Positions 17,701 to 43,508 of a stretch of DNA of 64,000 nucleotides are shown piece after piece. The notes beneath the pieces were generated by a model that was given only the letters and a program-made list of their open reading frames with translations, was not told the origin of the DNA and searched no databases. Source of the DNA: Mytilus californianus (Eukaryota); NCBI RefSeq assembly GCF_021869535.1, contig NW_026262668.1, forward strand, positions 12,276,001-12,340,000, written 5' to 3'. Within the stretch, counting starts at the first letter, position 1. Each line of letters opens with the position of its first letter. The position numbers and the translations under genes are program-made.

Positions 17701-20135
17701 GCTTTTGATTTTACCATTTGATAAAGGATTTTCCGTTTTGATTTTTCCTTGGAGTTCGTTTTTTTTTGTTTTTTTACTTATTTGATCATTCCAATGGTGT
17801 TTCAAAATAAAAAAAAATCGAAAATAAGCTTCAAAATTCTGTTATCAATTGATTTTACAACATTAGTAAAAACGTAGATTTTAAAGGGGCATTAGCTCCG
17901 AGATATGAAAAAAATTAAAATATGATTTGTTTTGGTTCAATCGTTAACGAAAGTGAAATAGTGAAATAATAATTCGCTTTTAGCAGCCAGTTTAGTTCAA
18001 TTATGTCAAAATAGGCTAAGAAACATCACTGATGAATTATTCACTTGCAATTGAATAATTCGACCTCACTAAATCCGTATTCATGTAACCTTCAATTTAA
18101 TCCCTTAGCTAGAGATGGGTTGCACATAAACTAGGCGTGTCAGCTATTAAAAGGAAAAAAATGTTAACATTGAAAGTGAAACAAGGTAAACCATTTGGTT
18201 GACTCATTCGATCCACAAAAACTCATTCTTATACAGGTAAAAACGATGATTAACATACTTTCAAAACCTATAATATGAAATCAAACAGACCTAGAAAAAT
18301 CCAATTGCACGTGTTCGCTATCTATTAATATCTATATTTATGTTTATATCGGGTTATTTGACCTTCGGCAGTCTTCGGATGTCACCTCGGTGGTTAATTA
18401 GATGGCGTATAGGCTAAAATACACACGAAATGCTGACACATGTTATCGAGTCTATGAATCGTAAATTGTTTATTTTAAACTTTTTATAATTTGAATATAC
18501 GTTTTAGTATGTTATAAATCAAATATGAGAATTTGCTTCAAGTTGGTGAACATGAATTCGACAGCTAATGCCCCTTTAAGGTTAATTCTAATACTTGTTT
18601 GCATTTCAAACAATAATATCCTCATGAGATATTAGATAAAACCACCCTATTTATTATATTCCTCTAAGTAGAGTCATACTTGACTCTCACAATAAATGCT
18701 AATAATTTTGGTAAAAATAAGTTTTTTTCATACCAATTATGATGTCTGGATTCCTGCATGATGTAAAAAAGGGGCAAAAATGCTACACCAAATGGACATC
18801 CAAAAACATATGTCGAAGAAAAACAAAGTCCTATGCAGAAAACTAAAGAACGCATAATTATTCCACTAAAACTGGCATTGAACTCGGAAATTGTTTGATG
18901 TTGTGGGGATTGCTCAACCTTTAGATTTCGTGGTTTTTCTTTTTTCTTTTTTGTGGAAGGGGTTGTTATCCATTTTTTGATGTGTTTGAGCTTTTGATTT
19001 TGCCATTTGATTAGGGACTTTCCTTTTTGAATTTTCCTCGGAGTTCAGTAATTTTGTGACTTTACTTTTTTCTAATGAATTATTGGATATCAAATTTCCT
19101 AACAAAAGTTTTTTTTGTTTCATGTGTAACGAAGTGAAGAATTTAAATTGTCTCTGTTACAAAATAGTAAAAAAAATAAAAAAATAAAAAAGCCCATTAC
19201 AATCTGAATGTTGATTCTTTTTCACAGAGATATAATTTATTGGAAAATTTCTTTTTGCCGTTTTGAAAGGAAACTTTATATCATATTTTTCTTACTGTCA
19301 CGAGAAAATGAAACAAGAGTAGAATGGAATAAAATGGACCATGCTTACCTTTGCGCAAACATTAAGGAATAATATTTTCCTAATTACTATGCAACTATTA
19401 TATTTTCGTGGGATACCGACCTTCGTAGATTTTGCAGTGTGCGCCAACTAGAAAATTACGTAAAGGTTTGATGTTTATATTGCGGAAAGTAAAAGCTACT
19501 GAATTGGCAATAATAGAATCTTTCACAAACTTCAAAAATTGATACCAAAAGAAAATTATCGTCTTATTCAACAAAAGGTATATGTATATGTCATATATAT
19601 GGTTTCAATTTACAGGTTGCAAACATTCCTGAAAAATCGTATATTTCTTACAAATCAAATGGACATACACACATTTATGTGGATAGGAAAAAGTACATAT
19701 TACAATTTTGCAATAAGAGACTACAATAATATTTCTTTATTTCAAATATTAAATATAAGTATTGGGTCATCAATCTTTTTTTGGGCGCATATCAAAGTTA
19801 GGACATTTCCCGTTCAACCAAAAATTAAATTAAATGATTTGGGTTATCACCTTCATAATGAATGTATCTTTGTGTACGTTATCCGAAACACGTATTTCCA
19901 ATCGAATTTCTTATATCAATGACTTGATTTACATCAATAAAATTTCTTTATCACATCGTACTTGCATAAATGAAAATCTACACAAATCTACCTACAGGTT
20001 CCAGACGCTGCTATCAAACAATGTGAGAACTACACTCTTGATCTTTCTCAGATGGGTTTTTTACATCCAAGTAAATCACAAACTATTCGTCCGAATCTAT
20101 CCAAAGAGCAACAAGAAGCAGCCACCAGAAGTTAA
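11728..20135 (+). CDS. PhyH-family Fe(II)/2OG dioxygenase, copy A (L-proline trans-4-hydroxylase/EctD-like), 308 aa, 9 coding exons
   Basis: Exons 11728-11764, 12682-12763, 13085-13175, 13819-13929, 14290-14381, 14737-14827, 15822-15954, 16740-16891, 19998-20135. All introns GT-AG with compatible phases; total 927 nt. Motifs [26 protein letters not shown] (HxD), [24 protein letters not shown] (distal His), RRWA (2OG-binding Arg). A probable 5'UTR intron lies at 11634-11709. Confidence 0.93.
16362..16635. mobile_element. Short HINE/pearl-like non-autonomous element in intron 7 of copy A
   Basis: agaatgtgtcc...gatgtcccc at one end; cggaacgtacgtacggacagac microsatellite remnant and terminal atgccc...ggggtat hairpin at the other. 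Confidence 0.55.
17031..17288 (-). mobile_element. tRNA-derived SINE (V-domain-like core)
   Basis: Reverse complement of the 36598-36858 family; (ATTG)n tail at 17031-17045; near-perfect TSD gaaggtctttag (17019-17030) / gaaggtttttag (17289-17300). Confidence 0.8.
17885..18575. mobile_element. Non-autonomous Kolobok-like DNA transposon in intron 8 of copy A
   Basis: Perfect 13-bp TIR AGGGGCATTAGCT / AGCTAATGCCCCT with TTAA at 17881-17884 and 18576-18579. Confidence 0.85.
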
Positions 20136-20289
20136 CATTTTCAGACTAAACTTTTATATCAAGTCAGTTTTAAAAGAAGTATTTAAAAAAAAATAATACT
20201 TTAAATTACAAATATATGATATTGATATACTGTGTTATTCTATCAACATTTATTTGAGTGCTTGAATCTCATTATCTATTTGAATATGA

Positions 20290-20450
20290 AATCAAGTATA
20301 TCATCGAACAAATAAGGTGTTATTCATATCTTGATCTTTTCCGTGATATTGACATAGATGGACGATTTCAAACTAGAATCTATAACAAACGTGATGATTT
20401 CAACCTTCTAATTTTCAAAATCCCATTTCTCATTAGACATTTTCGAAAAC
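20290..20450 (+). mobile_element. Highly decayed Naiad-like RT fragment
   Basis: SYLDL..DIDIDGRFQTRIYNKRDDFN in ORF 20258-20482. Confidence 0.6.
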
Positions 20451-22024
20451 TTATCGACACTGACGCTTACACCTATGCCTAGGACTACAGGTAACCTTTT
20501 TAGGTGGGGGTCATCTCAAGGTGTATAATGAGCACAGGCATTTATAAAAAAATATATATATAATTTACACTTTAAATACTGTATAAAAAAATATTTTCAA
20601 TGATTTGTTGATTTATTGGGTCTGCTTAGAAGCTGAGAACTGACCGATCTTCATATTATATTTTTAAAAAAAGGGGGAAGGCTTTGTGTAAATTAGTAGA
20701 ATTTTCCACAGAAAGTCAGGATTCTTTTCGTCAAAATCATCTCTCAATAACGCCGATTAATTTTTTCAATCGTGAAAATGGAAGCCATTGTAGGGATGAC
20801 CCGCGCTGTCAACTTAGCTCTTGAAAACCGATAAATTAATCCACGTGGCATAATTACGATCCTTACATGACAGTTCTGTTTTAAAAAACAAATGGATCTA
20901 CTAGCTATAAAGCATCTCATGTACTTTTAGGCCTTTTGTCAACTAAAATCTATTGTCTGGTTGGTTGTCAGGGGGAAATTTTGAAAGTTAATAAAAAAAC
21001 ATTAAAAAAAATTTATTTAAGTATTATGTGGAAGGGCAGACTAAACATTTGCAGAGGTTGAAGAATAATTAACCAAGATTACACACACAAAAATGTTTTT
21101 TTTTCTCAGTTATGCATTTTTAAGATCCACTTATAAAGTCATGGACTTTTTGTATAAATCCAAGAAGGAGTTAGTGAACAACATTTGTCCCACTTTTTTT
21201 TATACATTTCATAAATAAAATAATTAATATGCCTAAATTTTTCACAAAAAAATGAGTGAACGAAAGTAAAACAAAATACAACTAAGAAATACACTTCCAG
21301 TTTAAACATTTGACAGGTATCTCACTTGACCCATATATTTCCTGTTTTGGTACTGTGAATGTGTGACGTTATTATATCAAAATGTAGCCTAAATATATAA
21401 ACAAATAATGGATCTGAAGCGAGACTGATGTATCAATATTTTTGCTTTATACGTATTCAGGACAAAACAGTAAACTCAAACACGCTTGATCGTATTAAGG
21501 TGTATCCGATTTTCTCTTTTGATAAGATGAATACCGATTTTGGTTATTTTACCCCAAAAACTACATGAAATGTAATTTACTGCTTGAAAAAGATCAATCA
21601 GTATAATTCGACAATTAGAAGAAAACAGTTGGAATATCACAAATCATCATTAAAAGAATTCCAAAACTGATGAGAGCACTTTGTGTTTCTAGCTCAGATT
21701 TTGAATTAAAAATTATAGAAAACCAACTAACGAATAATTATAGAAAACCAACTAACGAATAATGAATTATATCTTTTTCTACCTCTGCTGAGTCAAACAA
21801 AGTTTTACGAGAGGGAGTTTTTTTCTATCCATCCTATTTGCAGGGTCGCTATATCAAAAATATATGCGTTTATTTTTAATTATAATTTACCTCCTTAATA
21901 TAGTTATAAATGTTAAATTAAATTCATTTAGTGTATTTTGACATTTTGATACGGTCATTCTATTTTTTTAGTCAGTGTAGGTATCGGTGTCGGTATAAGT
22001 GTCCGTGTAGATGACTTTTCGAAA

Positions 22025-22265
22025 ATGTCTATTAGTAACATGCCATCTGCTCCATCGTATAGCGCATACATATATCAATTGATACGTTACACTTGCACAT
22101 TTTCACACTGTACGGACTTCATTTACAGGGTTTTGCTCGCAAAAAAGTCGTCCAACAGTGTAATGCGACTGAATTCGACAATACAAAAGTTTTATGGTCA
22201 CTATCACAAATTTGTAGACCGATACGATATGTTTGTGTATCATATCAACTCGCTAGCGACATGAT
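22025..22265 (+). mobile_element. Decayed Naiad-like RT thumb fragment
   Basis: SNMPSAPSYSAYIYQLIRY...QKFYGHYHKFVDRY resembles the thumb region at 50160-50370. Confidence 0.65.
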
Positions 22266-22408
22266 TTTGTAATCTTAGATGTACCAGAATACTTGTCCAA
22301 TCCGATTTCGACAATTTAGATGAATGTGGTGGATTCGCATGGCGGGTGATGGATGTATATGGGTCCTCGATGCTCTTCAACTTCGCACTTTTAACTTTTT
22401 TGATTCGA

Positions 22409-22452
22409 GCGTCACTGATAAGACTTTTGAAGACGAAACGCGCGTCTGTCGT
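22409..22452 (+). ncRNA. Degenerate type I hammerhead ribozyme (family 2)
   Basis: gcgtca CTGATAA gac ttttgaa gac GAAA cgcgcg TC tgtcgt; core G8 is changed to A and stem II is mismatched. Confidence 0.6.
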
Positions 22453-22964
22453 ACAAAATTATCAGCCAGGTACTTTGATGTTTTTTTTAATTCACAACGG
22501 GAGACGCTTACCCTTTCGACGTACCCCGTCTCACTAGTAAAACCTGGTGTGTTACTTCTGTTAAAATAGGCATCGCACAATAGTGGACTGGTAAATGACT
22601 CTGTTCTAACCTTAAGACATAATCAAATTCATAAGCCATGTAGATTATCTAACCCTGAAACTTGCATTCATAGTCCTAATGATGGCCGTTCATATGTTTG
22701 TGAAATGGCTGTTCTGACTCACCAACATACTGTCTGCCGTATTTACACTGTAGAAGATACACAGCATTTGTAGTGTTGCAATTAACATCACATTTGATGT
22801 GGCGGCATGGTTAGTAACATTATCATCCTTTACGACTAACAAAATAGCTGATCTGAAAGGTACACTATTTACTTGCCACTATACATTATGTACTGTGTTA
22901 TAACCCTAAATTAATTCGACGAGAAGAGGCATTACTCGACCAGCGAAAGCTACATTTTTATATA

Positions 22965-23135
22965 GCCTAGGTGGTCGAGTGGTCTAGGGCGCTGGACACG
23001 GTGCAGGCGCTGTTGCCACGATGGCATAGACGCAAGGGTTCGAATCCCTCTGAGAGAAGAACAAAAATTTGCTAACGCAAATTTGAAGATCTAACATTGG
23101 AGGACTAAATTTGAAACGAAATATATATATATAAT
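22965..23135 (+). mobile_element. tRNA-derived SINE, second family
   Basis: Box A TGGTCGAGTGG 22972-22982, box B GGTTCGAATCC 23037-23047, ends in (TA)n. Confidence 0.65.
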
Positions 23136-23671
23136 GGTGAAAGCCCTGTATAACCCCGTGTAATCCGATGGAGAATGTCTGTTATATATCTTTGCAGCTT
23201 TGTTTGCGGTAAACCATCTTTGCCGCAAGTTTATTGTTTTCTGTTTGGTATTAAATTTATAGTTAAGATCCATTTATTACACTTTGTGATCCGTTTATTT
23301 GGCAATCGCCAATGGCAGTCAGCAGGATTTAAGAACATTTATTGTTCGACCTGTTAGTCAAATGCGTTTTGTTAAAATATACTTTTTTACTTTTTTAGTC
23401 TTTTGGAAAATGTTGTTTGTGCTGTATTTAGACCCCTCTAACAAGAAATCTGTTTGCATGCACACGTATAAAAATTGCGGTTTTTATCCAACGCAATCAT
23501 AGGTTTGAACGTTTTTTTCAATTTATACTTGTTTGTATTTTTTCTTTTGGGCTTGTATTATATTTGCCTTCGGGTTTATATGATCCGTTCATCATATTTT
23601 GACTCCTCAAGATTCAAGATTCCTAAATTGAGGTAAATGATGTGGCCTTCCAATAACCGTTTCGATTCCTA

Positions 23672-23715
23672 ACATCAATGAAGAGACATTAATTGTCGAA
23701 ATCCGGATATGGTGT
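23672..23715 (+). ncRNA. Type I hammerhead, family 1, core variant (C3 to A)
   Basis: acatca ATGAAGA gac attaatt gtc GAAA tccgga TA tggtgt. Confidence 0.75.
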
Positions 23716-24212
23716 ACAAAAAATCTTTGCACCTTTGTTTGCGGTATACCATCTTTGCCGCAAGTTTATTGTTTTCTGTTTGGTTTTAAATTTATAGTTA
23801 AGGTCCATTTATTACACCTTGTGATCCGTTTATTTGGCAATCGCCAATGGCAGTCAGCAGGATTTAAAAACATTTGTTGTTCGACCTGTAAGTCAAATGC
23901 GTTTTGTTAAAATATACCTTTTCACTTTTTTGGTCTTTTGGAAAATGTTGTTTGTGCTATATTTTGACCCCTCTAACAAGAAATTTGTTTCGCATGCACA
24001 TGTATAAAAATTGCGGTTTTTATCCAACGCAATCATAGGTTTGAACGTTGTTTTCAATTTAGACTTTTTTTATATTTTTTCGTTTGGGCTTGTATTATAT
24101 TTGCCTTCAGGTTTATATGATCCGTTGATCCTATTTTGACTCCTCAAGATTCAAGAGTCTATCCTAAATTGAGGTAAATGATGTGACCTTCCAATAACCG
24201 TTTCGATTCCTA

Positions 24213-24256
24213 ACATCACTGAAGAGACATTAATTGTCGAAATCCGGATATGGTGT
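24213..24256 (+). ncRNA. Type I hammerhead ribozyme, family 1, intact
   Basis: Helix I acatca/tggtgt; CTGAAGA; stem II gac-attaatt-gtc; GAAA; stem III t-ccgg-a; AUA cleavage triplet. Confidence 0.88.
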
Positions 24257-24750
24257 ACAAAAAATCTTTGCACTTTTGTTTGCGGTATATCATCTTTGCC
24301 GCAAAATTATTGTTTTCTGTTTGGTATTAAATTAATAGTTAAGATCCATTTATTACACCTTGTGATCCGTTTATTTGGCAATCGCCAATGGCAGTCAGCA
24401 GGATTTAAGAACATTTGTTGTTCGACCTGTTAGTCAAATGCGTTTTGTTAAAGTATACTTTTTCACTTTTTTGGTCGTTTGGAAAATGTTGTTTGTGCTG
24501 TATTTAGACCCCTTTTACAAGAAATTTGTTTCGCATGTACACATACAAATTGCGGTTTTTATCCAACGCAATCATAGGTTTGAACGTTGTTTTCAATTTA
24601 GACTTGTTTATATTGTTTTGTTTGGGCTTGTATTGTATTTGCCTTCAGGTTTATATGATCCGTTCATCCTATTTTGACTCCTCAAAATTCAAGAGTATAT
24701 TCTTAATTGAGGTAAATGATGTGGCCTTCCAATAACCGTTTCGATTCCTA

Positions 24751-24794
24751 ACATCACTGAAGAGACATTAATTGTCGATATCCGGATATGGTGT
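24751..24794 (+). ncRNA. Type I hammerhead, family 1, GAAA changed to GATA
   Basis: acatca CTGAAGA gac attaatt gtc GATA tccgga TA tggtgt. Confidence 0.75.
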
Positions 24795-25288
24795 ACAAAA
24801 AATCTTTGCACCTTTGTTTGCGGTATACCATCTTTGCCGCAAGTTTATTGTTTTCTGTTTGGTATTAAATTTATAGTTAAGATCCATTTATTACAACTTG
24901 TGATCCGTTTATTTGGCAATCGCCAATGGCAGTCAGCAGGATTTAAGAACATTTGTTGTTCGACCTGTTAGTCAAATGCGTTTTGTTAAAATATACTTTT
25001 TTACTTTTTTAGTCTTTTGGAAAATGTTGTTTGTGCTGTATTTAGACCCCTTTTACAAGAAATTTGTTTCGCATGTACACATACAAATTGCGGTTTTTAT
25101 CCAACGCAATCATAGGTTTGAACGTTGTTTTCAATTTAGACTTGTTTATATTTTTTTGTTTGGGCTTGTATTATATTTGCCTTCAGGTTTATATGATCCG
25201 TTCATCCTATTTTGACTCCTCAAAATTCAAGAGTATATTCTTAATTGAGGTAAATGATGTGGCCTTCCAATAACCGTTTCGATTCCTA

Positions 25289-25332
25289 ACATCACTGAAG
25301 AGACATTAATTGTCGATATCCGGATATGGTGT
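25289..25332 (+). ncRNA. Type I hammerhead, family 1, GAAA changed to GATA
   Basis: Identical to the 24751 copy. Confidence 0.75.
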
Positions 25333-25548
25333 ACAAAAAATCTTTGCACCTTTGTTTGCGGTATATCATCTTTGCCGCAAGTTTATTGTTTTCTGTTTGG
25401 TATTAAATTTATAGTTAAGATCCATTTATTACAACTTGTGATCCGTTTATTTGGCAATCGCCAGTGGCAGTCAGCAGGATTTAAGAACATTTGTTGTTCG
25501 ACCTGTTAGTCAAATGCGTTTTGTTAAAATATATATATATATATATAT

Positions 25549-26917
25549 GTATAAAACTATACTCGCATCCATGGACGTGTCTTCTTTATGTATAAATATC
25601 CACAAGACGAAGGAATAGCAGCGTGTGAAGAGGTATAGAACAATCGGAATGACAAAAATCCTCCAAATGAGTGCCTTGTTACATTTCTAAAACTAATGCT
25701 GGACATCAACAACTTGGCTTTCAATGACAAACACTTTCTACAGATAGCCCCGTCATATGCCAACATATTTATGGGCCAACTTGAAAAACGCCTCTTGGCT
25801 TGTGTTTCATACCAGCCATTATCATGATTTCGATTTATTAGTGATATTGATTTTAAATTGACAGATTCACAAGACCATCTGAATGCATTTCTTGAACACT
25901 GTAACTCTTTCCACCATTCAATTAAATTTACACACGAAACATCAATGGAGAAACTTAACTTTCTTGATGCTACGAGTTACATGAACGGAACCATGTTAAC
26001 CGATCTCCATACAAAGAAAACAGACAAACATCAATTTCCCTCTCCAAAATGTTGCCATCCGAAACACTGCTCCCGTGGTATCCATTTCAGCCAGGCATTG
26101 CGAATCAAGAAAATATGCTCAACTGAAAATAAGCAGCATGCTAGACCTGGACAACTACGTAAACATCTAGTTGTTCGAGGATACAATAATAACAGTATTG
26201 ATACAGCTTTCGAAAAAGCAAACACAATTAACCGCAAAGAACTTCTGGAGTACAAGGATAAGAACAAAGGCGCCAACAGAACACCTCTTGTACTCATTTA
26301 TCATCCTGATTTTAAAAATGTGTCATCCATTGTTCGAAAGCATTGGAACATTATAGAAAATGACTCCAATTTGAAAAAAAATATTTTCTTCACCACCAGT
26401 CATGGCCTTCAGAAGACCTAAACATATCCGTGACAAATTAGTGACAGCTGTATTAACAAAGCAACCTCCTCCACCTCCTGGTTGCTGCAAACAATGTAGG
26501 AGAAGAAATTGTTTATGCTGTAAAGTTGCCAATACTAGCAGTTCTTTCACCAGCTCCTTCGAAAAACAAAGTTAGACCATCTACGTAAATTACAACTGAA
26601 AAACGGAGAACTCAATTTATGAAATAACATGTAACACCTGTGGCATTCAGTACGTGGGAGAAACAATGCACAAGTTTAATATTCGGCCAAATAACCATTG
26701 ATCACGGTACAAAACCAACAAAAACTGTCCTCTCACCAGACATCTTCGCTCAAAGAAACATCCTTTTGATAATGTTACTTTTCAAATCATATAAGTGAAC
26801 ACTGAGTGGGATACCACGGCGAGAAGGAGAAGAGAAAACTTTTGGATCCACCAGCTCCATTCTTTAGAACCTGATGGTCTAAATGAAAAAGACGAGAAAA
26901 GATACAGGAAAGAATAA
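25549..26917 (+). mobile_element. 5'-truncated, decayed Penelope-like element with C-terminal GIY-YIG (Neptune-like)
   Basis: ASMDVSSL, F(R)FI(D)DI, SIKFTHE, LNFLD, FSQALRIKKICS; Cys-rich linker PGCCKQCRRRNCLCC; IYEITCNTCGIQYVGET; RENFWIHQLHSLEPDGLNEKD; several stops and frameshifts. The clade call rests on domain order and the Cys-rich linker. Confidence 0.82.
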
Positions 26918-27136
26918 TTTATTATGTAGCATCGTCCTTAACATCTCTGTAATATTGGCCTATGAACGTTGCAAACTTACCTTACTTAAACCATAAATAA
27001 TCTTGAACTTCATTTAAATTTTTAATTTATTTATAAGCAGTAAAAATTCACTGTACAATGAATTGCAAAAGTTTCTTATCTGCATCCGATTTCACCTGGA
27101 TAGATGCACGCTTGTTGAAGATAGATTGTCCTGCCA

Positions 27137-27999
27137 TCATATAAACCCGAAGGCAAATATAATAGAAGCCCAAAGGAATAGAATATAAACAAGTCTAAAT
27201 TGAAAACAACGTTCAAACCTATGATTGCGTTGGATAAAAACCGCAATTTTTATACGTGTGCATGCAACACAAGTTTCTTGGTAGAGGGGTCTAAATACAG
27301 CACAAACAACATTTTCCAAACGACCAAAAAAGTGAAAAAGTATATTTTAACAAAACGCATTTGACTAGCAGGTCGAACAACGGATGTTCTTAAACCCTGC
27401 TGACTGCCATTGGCGATTGCAAAATAAACGGATCACCAGATGTAACTAATTGACTCTTAACTATTAAATTAATACCAAACATAAAACAATAAACTTTTGA
27501 AAAAGAAGGTATACCGCAAACAAAAGGTGCAAAAATTAGTACACCATATCCGGATTTCGACAATTAATGTCTCTTCAGTGATGTTAGGAATCGAAACGGT
27601 ATTTGGAAGGCCATATAATTTTCTCAATTACCTCCGGATATGGTGAACTAATTTTTGCACCTTTTGTGTGCGGTATACTATCTTTTCCGCAAGTTTATTG
27701 TTTTCTGTATTAAATTAATAGTTAAGATCCCTATTGTTACATCTGGTGATCCGTTTATTTGGCAATTGCCAATGGCAGTCAGCAGGGTTTAAGAACATCC
27801 GTTTTTCGACCTGCTAGTCAAATGCGTTTTGTTAAAATATACTTTTTCACATTTTTTGGTCTTTTGGAAAATGTTGTTTGTGCTGTATTTAGACCCCTCT
27901 ACCAAGAAATTTTTGTTTTGCATGCACACGTATAAAAATTTCGGTTTTTATCCAACGCAACCATAGGTTTGAACGTTGTTTTCAATTTAGGCTTGTTTA
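27137..27999. repeat. Inverted pair of family-1 retrozyme units (~370-bp arms)
   Basis: Arm ~27186-27554 is the reverse complement of ~27633-27999; the 78-nt spacer holds the rest of the hammerhead. Confidence 0.88.
27541..27584 (-). ncRNA. Type I hammerhead ribozyme, family 1, intact
   Basis: Reverse complement reads acatca CTGAAGA gac attaatt gtc GAAA tccgga TA tggtgt. Confidence 0.88.
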
Positions 28000-29895
28000 C
28001 ATGTATATATAATATATATTGTTTACGTCTGTTTCTATTGTTATTAGATATTTGCGGAAACAAGGTCTATACCTAGGATTACTCTTAGACTTATGATTAC
28101 AGTTGACGAAAAACAAGGGGTCCTCTCAAAATAAAAAATAAACCTAACTGAGATACATAGTAAATTGAAATGATATTTTTTTTTATCATGGATTTGTGAT
28201 TGAAAATTATTGTCACTGTGAAATAAGAAATTAGGTCAATAAAATTTAGACACTTACGAATATTTTATTCTGTCGAGTTTCAGACCTTTCAATTAAAAAT
28301 AGTTTAATGCAATAAATTCCACAGTAGTCTTCAAAAATGTCTAACACTTCAAAAAAGGTTGACGTAATACGACATATATAGGTATACCAAAATGAATTTA
28401 TAAGTTATACCATGTGATTTATTACTGATAAAAAAATTTGTACTTTATGTCTTGATTTTGGATGTGGGAGAGCATTCATTTTAAAAAGATTTTTTTATTA
28501 TATATTACAGTGCAATCGATAAAGAAAATAACGTGGGAGTTGTACTGATGGTAAATCTGCGTAAAGTGTCCTGAAAACGTACTTAAATAGTTTCGATGGA
28601 AAGTGTTTGTTTCCTGGTGTATCTCGAGTGTAAATAAAAATATTCAAACAGTTCATTATTGGTGATGTCAAAAAACCATAAAATTACAATTTGGACTGCC
28701 ACTAAAGGATAGGGACAGAAATTGTGCATTGGAACTTGCCACCTACGGACCTCTCAGAGAGTTTTAAAGTACAGGGCATGGGATCGGATTTTACATCCCC
28801 ATTCTAACCGGACTTGGCTGAGAATTTATTCATCATGCACAACCGGACGCCCCTCTTTAAAAAAGGATTTTACTGTCGGAAGGGAAGATGAATCGCAATT
28901 TTTGGATTGAAAGTTTTATTGAAATCATGTCTGTAGTTAAATGAGACGTAGTGTTTTGCTAAGGTGATTACAAATTTATGAACCCCCTCATCCCCCACCC
29001 CTTGAGACAACTTTGTCCTAACAAATATAATTATGAAAGGTATGATATCTTCTTATTATAGAAATTAGTTCAAATATAATAGCGCATGCATTATAAATTC
29101 AAATACAATCTTGTTACATAAATTTTTATAGGGATAAGTAAGATAAATGCTACGTAGTTGCGTCCTCTTTTGACCGAGATAAGTTATTATCATAAGTTAA
29201 TATATTATCAAACAGATACGAATGTGTACGTGAATTTAGTACAGTAATCAAAGTAAACAATATTTACAACATTCAAAGGTAAGGATTCTTCAATCTATAA
29301 AATAGTGTTGGCCCTTCTTCTTACACATCATTAATTTACAGCCATATTTTCATCAATTTTCAAAAAGTTAATATGTTTCAAATCAGTATTGCGCTTGTTT
29401 ACCTCATAACGTCCACTAATGGAAAAATGTATTTTAATGACTTCAACGTCTTCGTTGACATAACGCTACAAAGGTATAACAATATACATACAGTATCATT
29501 TTAAATTTTATAGGTCTAAGAGCGATACCAGACAGGATTAAATGAACTCCAAGATATAACCAACATGTAACTAGTTACATGTAAGATCAGCACTCTCTAG
29601 TACTGTCAGAATATCTGTCATAAAACCACTCTAAAAAGGTTCTACCCTATTGTTCATGCATCACCTATCATGTCTTTCTAACGTTATACTCAAAAGCATT
29701 GTCATGGGCAGGAACTTTGAAAAACCTGTGCATATGTCAGTAAGAGAATTTTAAAAAGCGGAATTTATTTTATGAGATTACCGCAGTATATTTTCTTATT
29801 TTCAGTACGGTTTTTATGTTAACTTCATATACTTTATAAATTTCACAAAAGATTTTACTTTTTTAATTGTATTACAGGAGAGGCTTATTACAGCA

Positions 29896-32800
29896 ATGGC
29901 TACAGAAAGCACTAAACTGAACTCAGGTGTGTGTCCTTAACCATAGTAGTAGTAGTACTTGTGTAGAGGTTATGCCAAAATCAAATTGATTACAATACGC
30001 AAAACGTATCTCTGAAATCTATTATTTGGGAAATATCTCTAACCGTCTAGTTTATGTTAGGAAGATTAATTTTGTAAATAAATGCAATAAACAGAAAAAA
30101 AAATACCAGAATGAAATATAAACTCCACAACTGAGATAACACATTGAAAAATAAACCTAGGACATCTATATACATGTAGTTGAATGAATGGAGATGTGGA
30201 TTACATAGATATAAAAAGATGTGGTATAAGTGCCAATGAGACAATTTTCCATCCAAGTCACAATTTGTAAAAGTAAACCATTATAGGTGAAAGTACGGTC
30301 TTCAACACGGAGCCTTGGCTCACACCGAACAGCAAGCTATAAAGGGCCCCAAAAATGACTAGTGTATTCAAAGAGCTACTTATGACAACACTATTGGTAA
30401 TTAGAATATTGATGTAACTATCAAACAAATCGATTACTTGTGACTTGTTTATATGTTATGATTCATTGTCCAAAATAAGCTTGAAATATTAGCTACTGGA
30501 CGTTAGGCAAATATCAAGTCAATCATGTATAATTTAACTTTACAATCTACGCGCTGATACTGCAATTATTAAGGTAGAATTACGAGACCTAAATCTTACA
30601 CCTTGTGTAATTAAACACGGTCTAGATATGAGAGTGGAAACAGTAACATCTTCAAGATAAGCATCTTCTGCTATCCATGATGCATCATCCGTCATTCGGG
30701 GTTGGAATTATGTCCAGTAGTAAGTGCCATGTCAAAGAAAATGGCAAAATGTTGCAAAGAAAATCAATGTTGAAATTGTATATGAAGACATTATTCCCTT
30801 AACTAAATGATCTTAAAATCCCCAAAATAAAATAAAATGTTTAGTTTTGCAGATATATTATTGTAAGAGACGCTCATTCATTACTAACTTGACTTTTGTG
30901 ATCCTGCTTACATTTCTCATCAAATACTTTAAATTTATTTTGCAGAATACCTGTTTTATCGTGATGACTTCCAAGTCACACATAAGATGAAACAAAACTT
31001 TGACAAATATGGTTACATATTAGTAAGGTAAATGCTTTATGCACCAATAAATATATCTGAACAGTGAGTTAAAGCATTAATAAATGATAACATAAAAAAA
31101 AACATAAAACTACAATTATAAAAAGAAAAAAATGTATTTAATGTTGGTGTTGCATTCCAAAAGCGTTTTGATCAACGCAAAATGAAGTGTTTTGAAAGGT
31201 AAATCATATAAATCATTTCATAATGATAAATAATGTAGACAAATCGTTTATAGCCAGCATTTTCGGATGGAATTATTACACAGAACAGAATGAATCTGAG
31301 AAAAGAAAACAAAAACTTCAGTATAAATTATGTTAAAGTTGCAAAATAAGGTATGTTATTAAATTATGCAATATTTTTTAAAGAAGACCTTTAAAAGTGA
31401 TTATGATAGTATAAGGTGAAATTATTGGCTAGAATCATTTGAATATATTTTTAAATGTTTGCTTTGTAGGAGACTACTTGATAACGAAGAGGTTGAAAAA
31501 GTAAAGAAAGTATTCGAGAATGCAACATCAGAACAGATTCTTGAAGACAATCAAATGAGGGTAATTAATCAATATTAGAAAGAAATAGAACGGATAGCAA
31601 TATTGTCTGTGGTGTAGGCCTTTTCTTGTCTATAGTGTTCATAATCGATCTTACTTTATATTTTGTGTTTTAAAGTCTTGAATATTTGGAATATGTAACT
31701 TAAATTGCTGAATTTAAATATTGTATTGATATTTTTTTCTTTAAAATCGTTTCACAGACAGATTGTTGGGTGTATCTTTTAATTTTTATAAAAGTGTGAT
31801 GAGATGCAAAATATGCAATGTCATTAGGAATAATAAATGTTTTACAAATCTTGAAAATTTCAAAAAACTCGCTTAGCAGCTCTTTCTCTCGTTACTAGGA
31901 CTTCTGGGAAAACCTAATACACTGACAAAATATTCTCTTATTTGACTGAAATGATCAACTTGTATTAGGTCTTTCCACTTTTCCGTGGAAAGACCTATTG
32001 ATTTAGTTCTGATTATTTTTTTTTCCGCCAAATTTTTTTTCTTGCGCTGTTTGGTTGTTTCGCAAGATGTCGCTAAGATATTTGATATATGATATAGAAC
32101 AAAATAAACGCTTTTAAAACTGACACTGTTTAAACGAACACTTTTCTGTGTAAGAGTTATCTCACCAAACACTGTTTTTCTTGTTTGCGCATCTCCTTCG
32201 CAACCGTAAAAGAAATCGACAAATTTATTTTTCAAATTGCCTCGTTGAATCCTCAAGATGCTTTGGTTAATATTAACCGAAGCGATACTGAGACTCCATA
32301 TGTGTAAATGTAACACATGAACCGTAAGTGATAAAGACCTAGGGTATCTTGGTTTGAGGTCCTTGGTCTACCAAAAAGAAAATGGTGTCAAAGTCAAAGG
32401 TCAAGGTCATTTTCTAAATTTTGCCCTTTGCTTGTGTGTGCATCCTTACTTATACTATAAAAGCTAAATATAAAAGAACTGATGTTTTGGTTGTTGAGAA
32501 GAAGAAATGGTACATTCAAGCCGAAGCGATCTGATGATATCTTTTAGGAGTTATTGCCCCTAAAATGCTAAAATTTAAGGTAAATCGAATATAACTTCAA
32601 TCTGATACATAATAAAGCCAAAGTGTCTTTTGATAAGGGTTCGGTGACACATGACCTTGAAAAGTATCAACCGGAAGTGACTTTGTGCAAACTGGAAGTA
32701 GCTATTTTCGCAGGTGTTTGATGTTTTCTCGTGTTCATATTTTCTTAGAATTAAAAACAACTGCAATAGTTTTCTAACCTTGAAGGTTTCTGATGGTCAA

Positions 32801-35800: not shown

Positions 35801-38800
35801 ACAAAAAGGGACAAATGTATGATGTGTGTTGTTTTAATCATTTATATAATGTATTTTAATTTTCATAAATCTTGCAGGGCATAGTTCTATTTAAACAATC
35901 TTTTTGCTTATAGTTCTAACTGAACGAAATTTCATATCATATCATATGAAAAATGATTTGTGTTATTTCCTCCTAATATTTCATATTCATCCACTTCCAG
36001 ATGTAAGTCATTGATAGTTCACTCATGACACTTCGATTGTAAAAATTATTTTTTCTCATTGCGAAACTTGATATATCGTTCTAATTTTTATTCTTGGTTG
36101 TATATGCAAATTTTCAAGTTCATTCTATTGATAATTACATTTTCCTAAATTGAAGATATTGGAATGTTCGCACACATGTGGCAGACTCGATCATGAATTG
36201 ATGCATGGACAACAAGCCATACCAGACACTGGAAGAGTTGATCAGATTAAAGAACGTTGTCCATTGATATGGTGTGAAATGAATCCAGGTTAGATTTCTT
36301 AGTACTCAGTTAATCTGATATTTCATTTTCTAACGAAAACTATAGATAGGTTGTAAATGACGTAATTGGAGTTTGAGTAATTTCCTTTGGTCGCCATTTT
36401 TGAGGAATAAACGGTTGATTTTCTTTTTTGACCAACCAAATTGAAATATGCGATACACACACGTCTGATAAGAGATCTTTCCAAGATCGTATTGAAGAAT
36501 CAAGCAAGGTAAAAAGGAATTAAAAATGTTCAGAAAAAAAACCCTTTCTAAAGTCTAACAGTCAGTAAACTAGTTAAACTTGGCTGATTTATGAAGAGGA
36601 GCCTCAGTGGCCGAGTGGTCTAAGTAGTTACTACTGTAATCACTAGCCAGTCAACACTGAGGTTGTGAGTTCGAACCCCGCTCGTGCGGGTGCACTCGAC
36701 TCCAATCTTAATTGACTAGGATTGTCAGTTTTCCTATCGAAGGTCGGTGGTTTTCTCCGGACACTCCGGCTTCCTCCACCAATAAAAACTGGCCGCCACG
36801 AAATAGCCCAAAAACGGTGCTTAAAAGTGGCGTTAAAACACCAAAAATCAAAATCAATCTGATTTATGAAGAAAGTTGCGTACTTAGCCCTCCAATATAA
36901 CGACAAAAGGGAAGTAACTTTTGCTCAAATTGTGTCAAACGAAACCTATCTATTGCAGTCACAGTTGGGAAACTAAAAATGCGATATTAAGGAGGCATTC
37001 AAAACTAATAGTCGATGAACGCGAACGCGATTGCAAATAAAGATACAGACAGAAAGATAATGCTCTACATAATACATAAAAATAAAGATTGATTAACACG
37101 ATCTGATCAAAAATCTGGTTGAACTCGGATGCTTTGAATAGGTAAGCAGTCATGGTTGATTATATCATCTATTTAACGTTACTATTATATTGTTCATAAC
37201 AAGATCCTAAAGTCAAGTATTACGTTGACTATTTTCCGTTAGATTTGTTAACAGCAATAACAATGACAAAACATAATGAATGTAAGTAGATTTAAGTTAT
37301 ACGCCAATGAAAAATTTACTCGTTAACACAAATAACCGTTAAAGATATATCTATGTTTCAAAATTTGTTCACGCACTGATCATGGTTTTTAAATCGTACA
37401 TTAGTACAAGCATTTTATATCATTTGTTACAAATAATGCAGTTCTTTGATAGGTGATGCTTTATTTTTTCACTCCAACATGATGCATACAAGTAGTCAAA
37501 ACAGAAGTCCAAACAGAAGATGGGCTCTCCTGACTGCTTTCAATACGAAGTCAAACAATCCAACCAAAGAGCATCATCATCCATGCTATACACCACTAAC
37601 CAAGGTATTGCGAGTAGCTCCAGTTTTAACGCCTAGTGTAAATATTAGCAACTAAACAAAAGGTTATACGTCGATGAAACAGTATTCAAATAAATCAATG
37701 AAACTAAAAGATACGGTTTTATGCAATGCAGAAGTATTTTATCATATATCTAACTCTGATTGAAAATACCTCCAACAGAGACAACTTTAGATCCTCCATC
37801 CAACACAAACAGAACTACTAGAAACAAAGACATCTGCCGAGTTTGTTTTACTCGAGTCATATGTATTTATATATAGCGGGGTTAAATAATAGAATATTCA
37901 TCTGATTCACTTGACAGGGAACGCATGCATATCAGGAGACGGTTATGTAGACGAAACGCGCGTCTGGCGTATTAAATTATAATCCTGGTATCTTTGATAA
38001 CTCTTTACAACACTGGGTCATGCCGCTGCTGGTGGACGTTTCGTCCCCGAGGGTATCACCAGCCCAGTAGTCAGCACTTCGGTGTTGACATGAATATCAA
38101 TTATATGGTCATTTTTATAAATTTCCTGTTACAAAACTTTGAATTTTTCGGAAAACTAAGGATTTTCTTATCCCAGGAATAGATTACCTTAGCCGTATTT
38201 GGCACAACTTTTTGGAATTTTGGCTCCTCAATGCTCTTCAACTGTGAACTTGTTTGGCTTTAAAACTATTTTGATCTGAGCGTCACTGATGAGTCTTATG
38301 TAGAAGAAACGCGCATCTGGCGTATTAAATTATAATCCTGGTACCTTTGATAACTATTTACTCTGTCAATGCACCCGGTCTCGCTACTTTTGCAGTTCAT
38401 ATGATTCCCTAAGTTTGTGTTTGTTACTTTGATTTGTCTACTTAATTAATTAATTTATGTAATTTGAACATTAGTAAACTATTGTCGCCTTAATTAAACA
38501 TGTTTTCTGAGTAGTGATCGTTGAAGACAAAAGGGTATAAACAAAAACGTATAAAATGACTGTTGCACTTCATAGTGGATTTTACACGATAACGTCATGA
38601 ACAATATGGACGACCACTATATTATGCAGTGCCAAGTAAATTTGTGTATGTAAACATATTTAGAAAACAAGTCTAAATTGAAAACAACGTTCAAATCTAT
38701 GATTGCGTTGGATAAAAACCGCAATTTTTATACGTGTTTTCTTTGTAGAGGGGTCTAAATACAGCACAAACAACATTTTCCAAAAGACCAAAAAAAGTGA

Positions 38801-39916
38801 AAAAGTATATTTTAACAAAACACATTTGACTAGCAGGTCGAACAACGCATGTTCTTAAACCCTGCTGACTACCATGGCGATTGCCAAATAAACGGATCAC
38901 TAGATTTAACCAAATGATCTTAATTTTTGATTTAATACCAAACAGAAAACAATAAATTTGCGGAAAAGATGGTATACCGCAAACACGAGGTGCAAAAATG
39001 TGTACACCATATCCGTATTTCGACAATTAATGTCTCTTCAGTTATGTTAGGAATCGAAACGGTATTTGGAAGGCCATATAATTTACCTCAATTTAGGATT
39101 GACTCTTGAATTTTGAAGAGTCGAAATAGGATGAACGGATTATATAAACCCGCAGGCAAATATATTACAAACCCAAACGAAAAAATATAAACAAGTCTTA
39201 ATTGATAACAACGTTCAACCTATTTAGGAAAGACACAGCAAAATTTTTTTACAAAAATTGACATATCAATGATATTCCATGTCGGCACAACAGTGATACC
39301 CTCAAATCGTCAATCAGTTGGCCATCTGTGTAATGAATAGTGATCTCAATTAATTTTCAATTTTGTGTACAGTAAATGCACATAAAACAGGTCATGCATA
39401 CCTATAAGCAAACAGAAATAAAATCGTTAAATCTTGTAAAATGCTGCCGTTCATTAAAAATGTATATGGATAGACATGAACTTATATTATTTGACAGACA
39501 CCTGTATGCCAACTTTATATTTGACAAAAAAATGCTTGTTCAACTTTGCAAATGTTTATGGGCCATCTGAGACATAGACAAATACGAAAATGATAATTAC
39601 GTTGTCTGTAACAATAACATAAACAGTACTTATTTTACTGAACCAGATGCGCATTCATAATTTCAGTGGTGCTGTATAACTATTGAATAAATGATATACA
39701 TATGACTTCATTAACATTAATTGATTATAAGCGATATCGTGTTCCTTTTAATAAAAATCTACACCAATCTACCTACAGGTTCCAGATGCTGCTATCAAAG
39801 AATGTGAGAATTACACTCTTGATCTTTCCCAGATGGGTTTTGTACATCCTAGTAAATCACAAACAAGTCGTCCGAATCTATCCAAAGAGCAACAAGAAGC
39901 AGCCGCCAGAAGTTAA
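29896..39916 (+). CDS. PhyH-family Fe(II)/2OG dioxygenase, copy B, 306 aa, 9 coding exons
   Basis: Exons 29896-29926, 30946-31027, 31470-31560, 32786-32896, 33911-34002, 35306-35396, 36156-36288, 37453-37604, 39779-39916. Exons 2-9 have the same lengths and phases as in copy A; total 921 nt; HQD, distal His and RRW are retained. Confidence 0.93.
30205..30366 (+). repeat. Dispersed repeat fragment inserted in intron 1 of copy B only
   Basis: Reverse-complement match to ~40520-40685; the flanks join directly in copy A (~12060-12080). Confidence 0.7.
34404..35069. mobile_element. TIR element with an internal ~30-nt-period palindromic array, intron 5 of copy B
   Basis: Perfect 20-bp inverted repeat CATTCCGCTGCGTGCAAAAG (34413-34432) / 35041-35060; about 13 TTTCCT-N-AGGAAA-like palindromes at ~34600-34945; not present in the copy A intron. 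No TSD recognised. Confidence 0.75.
36598..36858 (+). mobile_element. tRNA-derived SINE (V-domain-like core) with a 14-bp TSD
   Basis: Box A TGGCCGAGTGG, box B GAGTTCGAACCC, core ggttttctccggacactccggcttcctccacc; TSD ctgatttatgaaga at 36584-36597 and 36859-36872. The family assignment is tentative. Confidence 0.88.
37943..38359 (+). mobile_element. Retrozyme monomer, family 2 (353-nt unit, ~65-nt terminal redundancy), intron 8 of copy B
   Basis: 3' half-hammerhead at 37943-37970 and full motif at 38280-38323 (gcgtca CTGATGA gtc ttatgta gaa GAAA cgcgca TC tggcgt); cleavage positions 37964 and 38317. Confidence 0.85.
38661..39219 (-). mobile_element. Circularly permuted family-1 retrozyme monomer, intron 8 of copy B
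   Basis: Same unit as the 23187-25526 array. Begins and ends with ~aacaagtctaaattgaaaacaacgttcaa; hammerhead at 39004-39047 (core intact, stem III tacgga). Confidence 0.85.
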
Positions 39917-42589: not shown

Positions 42590-42633
42590 ACATCACTGAA
42601 GAGATATTTTTTGTCGAAATGCGCATCTGGTGC
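42590..42633 (+). ncRNA. Type I hammerhead ribozyme, family 3, apparently intact
   Basis: acatca CTGAAGA gat atttttt gtc GAAA tgcgca TC tggtgc. Confidence 0.78.
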
Positions 42634-43508
42634 AGAAAAATTGGTACCGTTTAATGTTATTTCAGTACATTATACAGTGAATCTCATACTTGTCATAACA
42701 CTAACACACTCCATTTTTTTTTATCATACCTGGGATCAAAAGATTCATGTATCAGCCAAAGATCGATCAAATACAGTATTTTTACCACATCATCAATGAT
42801 ATTTTTAACATGTTATCAAAATAGTATTAAGGAAAATACCTTTTCTATAAATAGATTTTATCTATTTCACCTTCGAAAAGGACCTTTGGTAACCCTTTTA
42901 TCACTTCCTTTGTACGGTCAACCACACCGTTGTTAATCGATAATGTATGAAAAGTCCATATTTTGTCCCATTGAATTAAAAATCATAAAGTGTTATAATA
43001 AATCTGCCAAATAATACCGTTTAGATACTAGTCTTAATCTATATCATTATGTGTGTTTTTAGTTTGCCTTTCATGTTGCTTCAAGCCTTCAAGCTATTCA
43101 CATTTAAAAAAGACTGCAAAAAACTACCAAATTCTGTTCTAAAGCAACCCTATTTTATAATGTTATTGATGTATCAATAATGTAAACACTCCTTTAAGAG
43201 TTGGTGGAGTATTCGCCCATTAATGCACTTTTCAAAAGCCGACTAAAGGATGTTTTACTATATCCCCGTCTTTTATAACCTGTTACTACATTTTCGTACC
43301 AAATTTAAAGCGATATTTTCTTAAGCTAGCACTGGATCGGTACCACAACTGGTGGATTGTAGATCCCCGAGAGTATCATTATCGTGGTCGCTTCGAATTC
43401 GGTACTGATACAAATGATTAAAGTACCTTTCTTAAATTCTTCGTCGACAAATTCAGAAATGATAACAAGACTGTATTTACAACTCCCGAAGGCAAAGTTG
43501 ACGTCACA

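Follow-up and report, generated by a model that had tools for sequence, protein, structure and literature searches.

The 64,000-nucleotide stretch of the Mytilus californianus genome analysed here (contig NW_026262668.1, positions 12,276,001 to 12,340,000 of the forward strand; hereafter the window) contains a tandem array of a non-coding unit of about 540 nucleotides (nt), each complete copy of which carries the motif of a hammerhead ribozyme. The organisation of this array, the distribution of the unit over the genome and the scars left by its insertion suggest, with a probability of roughly 0.7, that the array goes back to an old insertion, by now partly inactivated, of a family of metazoan retrozymes that is non-autonomous and non-coding, belongs to the kind that lacks long terminal repeats (non-LTR retrozymes) and is moved through the cycle of transcription and target-primed reverse transcription that is proposed below.

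A first-pass annotation of the window had described about 4.3 head-to-tail units of about 538 nt, and this description is confirmed by a repeat search and by BLAST of the second unit against the window, which together define one array of about 4.35 units (Table 1). The array opens with a 5'-truncated unit (positions 14-541), continues with three full units, which measure 541, 538 and 538 nt, and closes with part of a fifth (1 to about 207). Its unit boundaries fall between CCGGATA and TGGTGT, which places the cuts at 23709, 24250, 24788 and 25326. Tandem Repeats Finder left the array undetected in the window because its period limit is 500; the window sequence itself contains no N. Both of the internal hairpins previously noted, ttgcgg..ccgcaa and ttggc-aatc-gccaa, are present in the unit. 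No open reading frame (ORF) in the unit extends beyond 100 amino acids (aa), and Pfam gave no match for the 100-aa ORF within the units, nor for three further flanking ORFs.

The ribozyme motif is well defined. In its 32-nt form it is matched four times in the array and six times in the window, and not at all in 100 shuffled sequences. Helix I is formed by ACAUCA/UGGUGU, a 6-bp helix that includes one G-U pair. The core C3-A9 follows as CUGAAGA, then helix II as GACA-UUAAU-UGUC, with 4 bp and a 5-nt loop instead of the 3-bp stem first reported, and then GAAA. Helix III consists of A15.1-UCCGGA-U16.1, beyond which lie A17 and the predicted cleavage site. The topology is that of a type I hammerhead, with the flanks closing helix I and hairpins at helices II and III. 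All elements of the invariant core (CUGANGA...GAAA, G10.1-C11.1, A15.1-U16.1 and H17) are found in unit 2 and in the family consensus.

C3 and A14 are invariant positions of the hammerhead core, and it is here that the remaining units of the array have changed (Table 1). The statement that a hammerhead occurs once per unit thus holds for the motif, which is present in each complete unit, but not for the intact core, which is retained by unit 2 only. Since three of the four cores carry mutations at invariant positions, the release of 538-541-nt monomers from this locus, as had been envisaged, is unlikely. The change A14>U is common to units 3 and 4, which suggests some local duplication. When the whole window was scanned strictly, four hammerheads passed: that of unit 2 (24219), one on the minus strand (27578), a variant (42596) and one of a type already published from mussels (49822).

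Table 1. Positions of the array, its hammerheads, further unit copies and neighbouring elements in the window.
Feature	Position	Strand	Basis or remark
Tandem array of the ~540-nt unit, 4.35 copies, head-to-tail	23188..25533	+	Repeat search; BLAST with unit 2 as query
Hammerhead of unit 1, core mutated to AUGAAGA (C3>A)	23672..23715	+	Sequence; fails full-motif scan
Hammerhead of unit 2, sole intact core of the array	24213..24256	+	Full-motif scan; predicted cleavage 24250/24251
Hammerhead of unit 3, core mutated to GAUA (A14>U)	24751..24794	+	Sequence, motif scan
Hammerhead of unit 4, core mutated to GAUA (A14>U)	25289..25332	+	Sequence, motif scan
(TA)n run	25526..25549	.	Marks the array's non-canonical 3' break (unit position ~200) and the 5' junction of the Penelope-like relic
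Decayed, 5'-truncated, endonuclease-bearing Penelope-like relic	25553..27130	+	Translations, genome copies, BLAST
Inverted unit copy (positions 458-541, then 1-412), intact hammerhead 27541-27584 (-)	27136..27629	-	BLAST, motif scan
Unit copy (~535-541, then 1-361) with canonical 3' end, followed by TA-rich sequence	27632..27998	+	Repeat search, BLAST
5'-truncated insertion (326-541, then 1-366) with canonical 3' end and 7-bp target-site duplication CTAAATA	38661..39223	-	BLAST

The window array is an old, decayed and largely inactivated insertion. This is judged from its neighbouring full units, which are 93.9% and 97.8% identical and so fall below the values of young arrays elsewhere, from its three dead cores, from its 3' break at unit position ~200 and from the relic of a Penelope-like element (PLE) that is inserted there. 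The copy at 38661-39223 likewise has a degraded hammerhead, in which helix III reads UACGGA.

As a monomer, the hammerhead has a helix III of only 2 bp around a CCGG loop, and its predicted folding energy (-2.1 kcal/mol) compares poorly with that of an alternative fold (-8.1 kcal/mol). Two 44-nt hammerheads, by contrast, cofold into a double hammerhead at -24.7 kcal/mol, as against 2 x -8.1 kcal/mol for the monomers, with a helix III that is now 8 bp long (AUCCGGAU). Sequence diversity in the hammerhead region is 0.8%, compared with 1.6% in the rest of the unit; because the units were selected via an anchor inside the motif, this difference is not used as evidence.

The same unit is widespread in the genome. 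In the assembly searched (1.65 Gb, 175 contigs), the 37-mer of the intact hammerhead has 9,801 exact matches, and a 25-mer spanning the 3' end of the unit and the adjoining (TA)n has 3,543, while the reversed-pattern control gave 0 for each. These counts correspond to about 2.8 intact hammerheads per scored insertion, and the smallest arrays have about one unit, the largest at least 17. Among the 66 non-redundant anchor matches in the sampled loci, 64 are hammerhead contexts, and the two commonest forms, both of them intact, make up 39. The consensus derived from 45 units is 540 nt long, with a GC content of 34%.

Insertion sites were compared by mapping the units on 20 genomic stretches, from which the ends of 15 arrays and the starts of 18 could be taken. 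All 15 ends lie at unit position ~357-366 (...CAATTTAGACTTGT[TT]), and most of them continue into (TA)n. The starts are scattered, occurring at positions 53, 65, 106, 115, 121, 169, 240, 249 and 274, and at 297, 326, 411, 435, 436, 440, 451, 497 and 502; none of the 18 coincides with the cleavage site, and many of the 5' flanks are also (TA)n. Target-site duplications (TSDs) are visible where the target is not a microsatellite, as with AAATTCTAGA in locus L014, AAATATACA in L024 and the duplication flanking the copy at 38661-39223, and in some copies they are 7-10 bp long. In the window, the copies at 27136-27629 (-) and 27632-27998 (+) form a head-to-head inverted pair, and further pairs of this kind occur in L032 and L021. 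The sampled arrays consist of the unit alone and contain no ORF.

PLEs are described as having constant 3' ends and truncated 5' ends, as forming partial tandems and inverted partners that are themselves 5'-truncated, and as favouring (TA)n (PMC8557442); the (TA)n bias has been noted in mussel Naiads and in PLEs with a CX2-5CxxC linker (PMC8557442). The fixed 3' ends, variable starts, TSDs, inverted pairs and (TA)n targets of the 540-nt family therefore constitute a PLE insertion signature, and the proposal that a Penelope-like reverse transcriptase (RT) acts as the mobiliser fits these scars. Genome counts, fixed ends and TSDs together also uphold the identification of the array as a dispersed tandem-hammerhead retroelement of the metazoan non-LTR retrozyme type. 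One could instead regard it as ordinary satellite DNA, grown by unequal crossing-over around a chance, fossil hammerhead-like motif, as the tandem layout and the A14>U change in both unit 3 and unit 4 might invite. Such an origin is extremely improbable, since short arrays are scattered over the genome by the thousand, with TSDs and with a 3' end that is constant where the 5' ends vary, and since the motif satisfies every invariant position of the core.

The arrays also carry information on the template from which they were copied. Every sampled array spans at least one cleavage junction, and the inserted DNA has its 3' end 175 nt upstream of where the hammerhead is predicted to cut. A linear monomer released by cleavage is therefore not the usual template; that role falls to a ligated circle or to an uncut multimer. 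At its terminus the unit reads ...CUUGUUUAUAUUUUU, and the alternative registers that are seen, GT/ATAT and GTTT/ATAT, fit microhomology priming. In an 11-unit array at G000:C121:30661786-30667175, the two ends of which are loci L029 and L030, ten full units of 539 nt score equally and are bordered on either side by part-units; the first and last full units are 100% identical. Within young arrays the units are 98-99.8% identical, and the median between loci is 97.6%. This pattern of identity fits rolling-circle copying, and equally copying from a homogeneous source array.

The cycle that we propose for the family would begin with transcription of its arrays. The hammerheads of neighbouring units would then pair via the self-complementary AUCCGGAU and cut after CCGGAUA, and the monomers might be ligated to circles of ~540 nt, or multimers might be left uncut. 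A (TA)n target would be nicked by a Penelope-like RT with its GIY-YIG endonuclease, and the nicked TA end could pair with the internal UAUAU (unit position ~362-368) and so prime reverse transcription. The enzyme would pass the ribozyme junction and copy beyond the length of one unit before halting at a random point, and the expected outcome is tandem arrays with fixed 3' ends and variable 5' ends. The likeliest mobiliser would be the young endonuclease-bearing PLE family whose relic adjoins the window array. In its most specific form, the proposal is that a ribozyme-made ~540-nt circle is reverse-transcribed in rolling-circle fashion by one active PLE family, primed by (TA)n at UAUAU ~362-368, and that two junctions described below, in L020 and L029, are template switches; in this full detail the proposal is tentative and, in our estimation, rather doubtful.

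Several observations weigh against this cycle, and they concern the ribozyme, the circle and the mobiliser in turn. When the whole window was searched at the Rfam gathering score, nothing was returned, RF00163 (hammerhead type I) included. At E<=10 over 7 kb, the array hammerhead again remained unmatched, and the search gave chance-level matches together with a decayed hammerhead of the published type at 22409; the weak U6, miRNA and CRISPR-repeat matches obtained there were rejected as noise. With RF00163 applied to 86 nt of unit 2 alone, the alignment scored 22.4 bits (E = 0.001) against a cut-off of 34. In this check with Infernal, which had been suggested, the score lies under the gathering cut-off and the motif aligns with the model from end to end (model positions 1-45).

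The predicted circle fares less well. Published retrozyme circles are described as 'highly self-paired' (PMC7229834), and the 540-nt unit does not share this property. The circular minimum free energy of its plus strand is -99.4 kcal/mol, compared with a mean of -103.1 kcal/mol for shuffled sequences (z = +0.56), with 61% of bases paired; the fold is thus no more stable than that of the shuffles.

Nor was evidence for cleavage or for a circle obtained from RNA data. A permuted unit (23980-24520, with the cleavage site central) was matched to three raw RNA-seq runs carrying two organism labels and to one contig set. About 6% of each run was sampled, and two of the three libraries were prepared with oligo-dT, so that circles would be missed there. 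Matching reads number 1,112, 2,499 and 1,410 in the three runs, and they fall on both strands about equally, in both mate orientations. In none of the three runs, the libraries of which are ill-suited to its detection, do read ends pile up at 24250/24251, and the site is crossed by reads. Of the reads that reach unit position 366, about half exit into (TA)n or unique flanks, while the rest continue in the unit. Read-through transcription of dispersed insertions, or some carry-over of DNA, would give this pattern; a dominant circle would not. Reads that span the junction cannot separate a circle from tandem DNA or RNA. A dip in read depth at 24265-24340 was considered as a signal and rejected as an alignment artefact, a common variant being different there. 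Among the listed records that contain the stretch, none is recorded as RNA.

These results bear on the possibility that no circle is formed at all, and that uncut, multimeric read-through transcripts of existing arrays serve as the template, with the hammerhead being dispensable or a passenger. Such transcripts would explain why reads cross the cleavage site without ending there and why the unit shows no excess of predicted structure. They would also suit an identity within arrays that is usually 98-99.8% and not 100%, as expected from a slightly heterogeneous source array. However, the genome has kept its 9,801 exact intact hammerheads, and a related family in the window retains the palindrome of helix III by paired changes (UCCGGA to UGCGCA). 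In addition, the first and last units of the 11-unit array are identical, and two of the three RNA libraries, being oligo-dT, are blind to circles. On balance, a cycle without any circle seems unlikely, though not far-fetched.

With regard to the mobiliser, the PLE relic beside the array preserves the C-terminus of the RT (APSYANIFMG...), a Cys-rich linker of the CxxC type (CCKQCRRRNCLCC) and a GIY-YIG domain (IYEITCNTCGIQYVGET), interrupted by stops and frameshifts. It matches positions 448-2069 of a 2180-nt reference copy, L048:5569-7748, at 84%, and an intact relative has an open frame of 615 aa with RVT_1 and GIY-YIG. The family has at least 56 scored copies in the genome, inverted pairs among them. 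Its 199-nt 3' end is 100% identical in at least 40 copies, which are often arranged in inverted pairs, and this end, ...CATTGTTAGGCAATCTATAT, runs into (TA)n. The reference copy corresponds to G000:C143, ~843.6-845.7 kb, and the PLE family is very young. On its far side, the relic in the window lacks its last ~110 nt and abuts the inverted unit at position 412, a non-canonical junction (27130-27136) that is probably a later deletion.

This PLE family is a candidate mobiliser of the 540-nt unit. The unit occurs within 1.5 kb of four of nine PLE loci picked by the PLE alone, and the PLE lies beside four of about 21 arrays picked by the unit alone, both being raw counts; each family occupies at most a few tenths of a percent of the genome, as roughly estimated from candidate counts. 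Two junctions lack (TA)n between the elements. In L020, the 3' end of the PLE passes straight into unit position 436, with microhomology of CAA; in L029, 42 nt from the PLE 3' end stand in inverted orientation at the 5' end of the array and join it at unit position 274. These junctions look like template switches or two-ended priming in single integration events.

The association could nevertheless be explained by a common (TA)n target instead of by mobilisation. In that case the neighbouring PLE would merely share its targets with the unit, which would be copied by another PLE, such as a Naiad, or by a long interspersed nuclear element (LINE). The (TA)n bias is indeed general to mussel Naiads and to PLEs with a CxxC-type linker (PMC8557442), and several of the juxtapositions of unit and PLE have (TA)n between them, as sequential insertions would. 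BLAST of the unit against the PLE revealed no sequence similarity, their 3' ends having only a resemblance in TTAGRC...TATAT, as judged by eye, and among the PLE copies examined none showed a hammerhead motif. What speaks for the neighbouring PLE is the strong enrichment in both directions and the two junctions without (TA)n, tandem in L020 and inverted in L029. A different mobiliser is thus a serious possibility, if somewhat short of an even chance.

It is very improbable that the unit is the pseudo-LTR, or terminal repeat, of an autonomous PLE, in which case the arrays would be multimers of solo pseudo-LTRs and not an independent non-autonomous element. PLE pseudo-LTRs do bear hammerheads and form tandem and inverted structures (PMC4209133, PMC8557442), and PLE relics adjoin many copies of the unit. 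Yet arrays of 2 to at least 17 units hold the unit only, with no ORF, and the adjacent PLE has no sequence in common with it. Furthermore, the hammerhead is of the canonical metazoan form (6 and 4 bp) and not of the minimal PLE type, the helix II of which has 7-8 bp (PMC4209133).

We therefore return to the reading of the array as a metazoan non-LTR retrozyme, for which the nearest published relative is Mg353 from Mytilus galloprovincialis. Mg353 has repeats of 350-390 bp, two closely similar hammerhead families (A and B), with the hammerhead ...CACUGAUGAGUCUUUUGUAGACGAAACGCGCGUC, and abundant circular RNA (circRNA) (PMC7229834). Like Mg353, the 540-nt family consists of tandem repeats that are AT-rich and non-coding; each unit has one type I hammerhead, and LTR, primer-binding site, polypurine tract and ORF are all lacking. 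Both have a 6-bp helix I, a 4-bp helix II and a weak helix III whose palindromic loop makes a dimeric ribozyme the favoured form, and both occur as thousands of dispersed copies with TSDs of more than 4 bp. These dimensions agree with the canonical metazoan type I hammerhead, in which helices I and II measure 6 and 4 bp and a palindromic loop caps a helix III of 1-2 bp (PMC4209133).

The two families differ in size and in sequence. Metazoan retrozyme circRNAs measure 170-400 nt and their repeats 150-450 bp (PMC7229834), whereas the unit described here, at 538-541 nt, lies above the 170-400-nt range of monomers in the class. Its hammerhead differs from that of Mg353 in helices I, II and III, so that the two are unrelated beyond the invariant core, and its predicted circle, unlike that of Mg353, is no more structured than shuffled sequence. 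BLAST of the unit found no similarity in those stretches of the window where Mg353-type hammerheads lie. In the assembly, the published Mg353-type hammerhead has 2,938 exact copies as a 34-mer, ~355-365 bp apart where tandem; by exact hammerhead count, the 540-nt family is the commoner of the two (9,801 37-mers against 2,938 34-mers). Mg353 and the 540-nt family share not only this genome but also this window. Hammerheads of the published Mytilus type (...CACUGAUGAGUCUU[U/A]UGUAGACGAAACGCGCGU...) lie at 22409-22452 (+) and 49816-49860 (+). The first of these is decayed (CUGAUAAG, with G8>A; 16.5 bits with RF00163), and the second, at 49822, is intact and passed the full motif scan.

The family can also be compared with other hammerhead-bearing elements. 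As in PLEs, its insertion is biased towards (TA)n, its copies are truncated at the 5' side with a constant 3' end and form partial tandems and inverted pairs with a 5'-truncated partner, and its hammerheads are suited to dimers (PMC4209133, PMC8557442), but its unit has no ORF, is not the flank of an RT gene and carries a hammerhead of the canonical metazoan type. Metazoan retrozymes as reviewed have no conserved motif pointing to a mobiliser, and their mobilising enzyme is given as unknown (PMC7761336); in the 540-nt family, by contrast, the 3' terminus is defined and the target is (TA)n. PLEs have been called no more than 'a strong candidate' for the mobilising role (PMC7229834). Newt satellite 2 and Schistosoma Sm-alpha are similar in being tandem or SINE-like (resembling short interspersed nuclear elements), with type I hammerheads, an unstable helix III and double hammerheads (PMC4209133, PMC7229834). 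They differ in sequence, host phylum and unit length, and the termini of the 540-nt family indicate a specific integration route.

A second, related hammerhead family is present in the window at 42590-42640 (+), with fragments at 48522-48591 and 39613-39655 and, outside it, at L043:2975-3044 and L032:942-1022. Its helix I and its CUGAAGA are those of the 540-nt unit, and in helix II a G-U wobble replaces a G-C pair. Helix III has changed from UCCGGA to UGCGCA with the palindrome kept, and cleavage is predicted after UC. The sequence that it has in common with the 540-nt unit is confined to the ribozyme and the ~30 nt that follow it. A short distance upstream of the array, a stretch at 22966-23052 (+) that looks tRNA-like by eye, ggtggtcgagtggtctaggg ... 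ggttcgaatccctc, is followed by a short (TA)n. ARAGORN reported no tRNA over 20000-30000, and this stretch may be the head of a tRNA-derived SINE.

The hammerhead of the 540-nt family is absent from the supplement text of PMC7229834, and no description of a ~540-nt mussel hammerhead repeat was found in the literature searched. The suggestion that a unit of this length may belong to an undescribed family is thereby supported, the unit being longer than the 170-400 nt of the class and distinct from Mg353 in hammerhead and in sequence. The family is new and has a larger unit, but it belongs to a known class, the metazoan non-LTR retrozymes, and is not a new kind of element; it extends the size range of that class to ~540 nt. 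Because the family combines a sharp 3' terminus, a (TA)n target, inverted pairs and fusions with a PLE, the question of which RT copies retrozymes, and from which template, becomes testable in one organism. If the circle is indeed copied by the PLE identified here, these insertions would be direct genomic evidence of metazoan retrozyme movement, and the long-sought autonomous partner would have been named.

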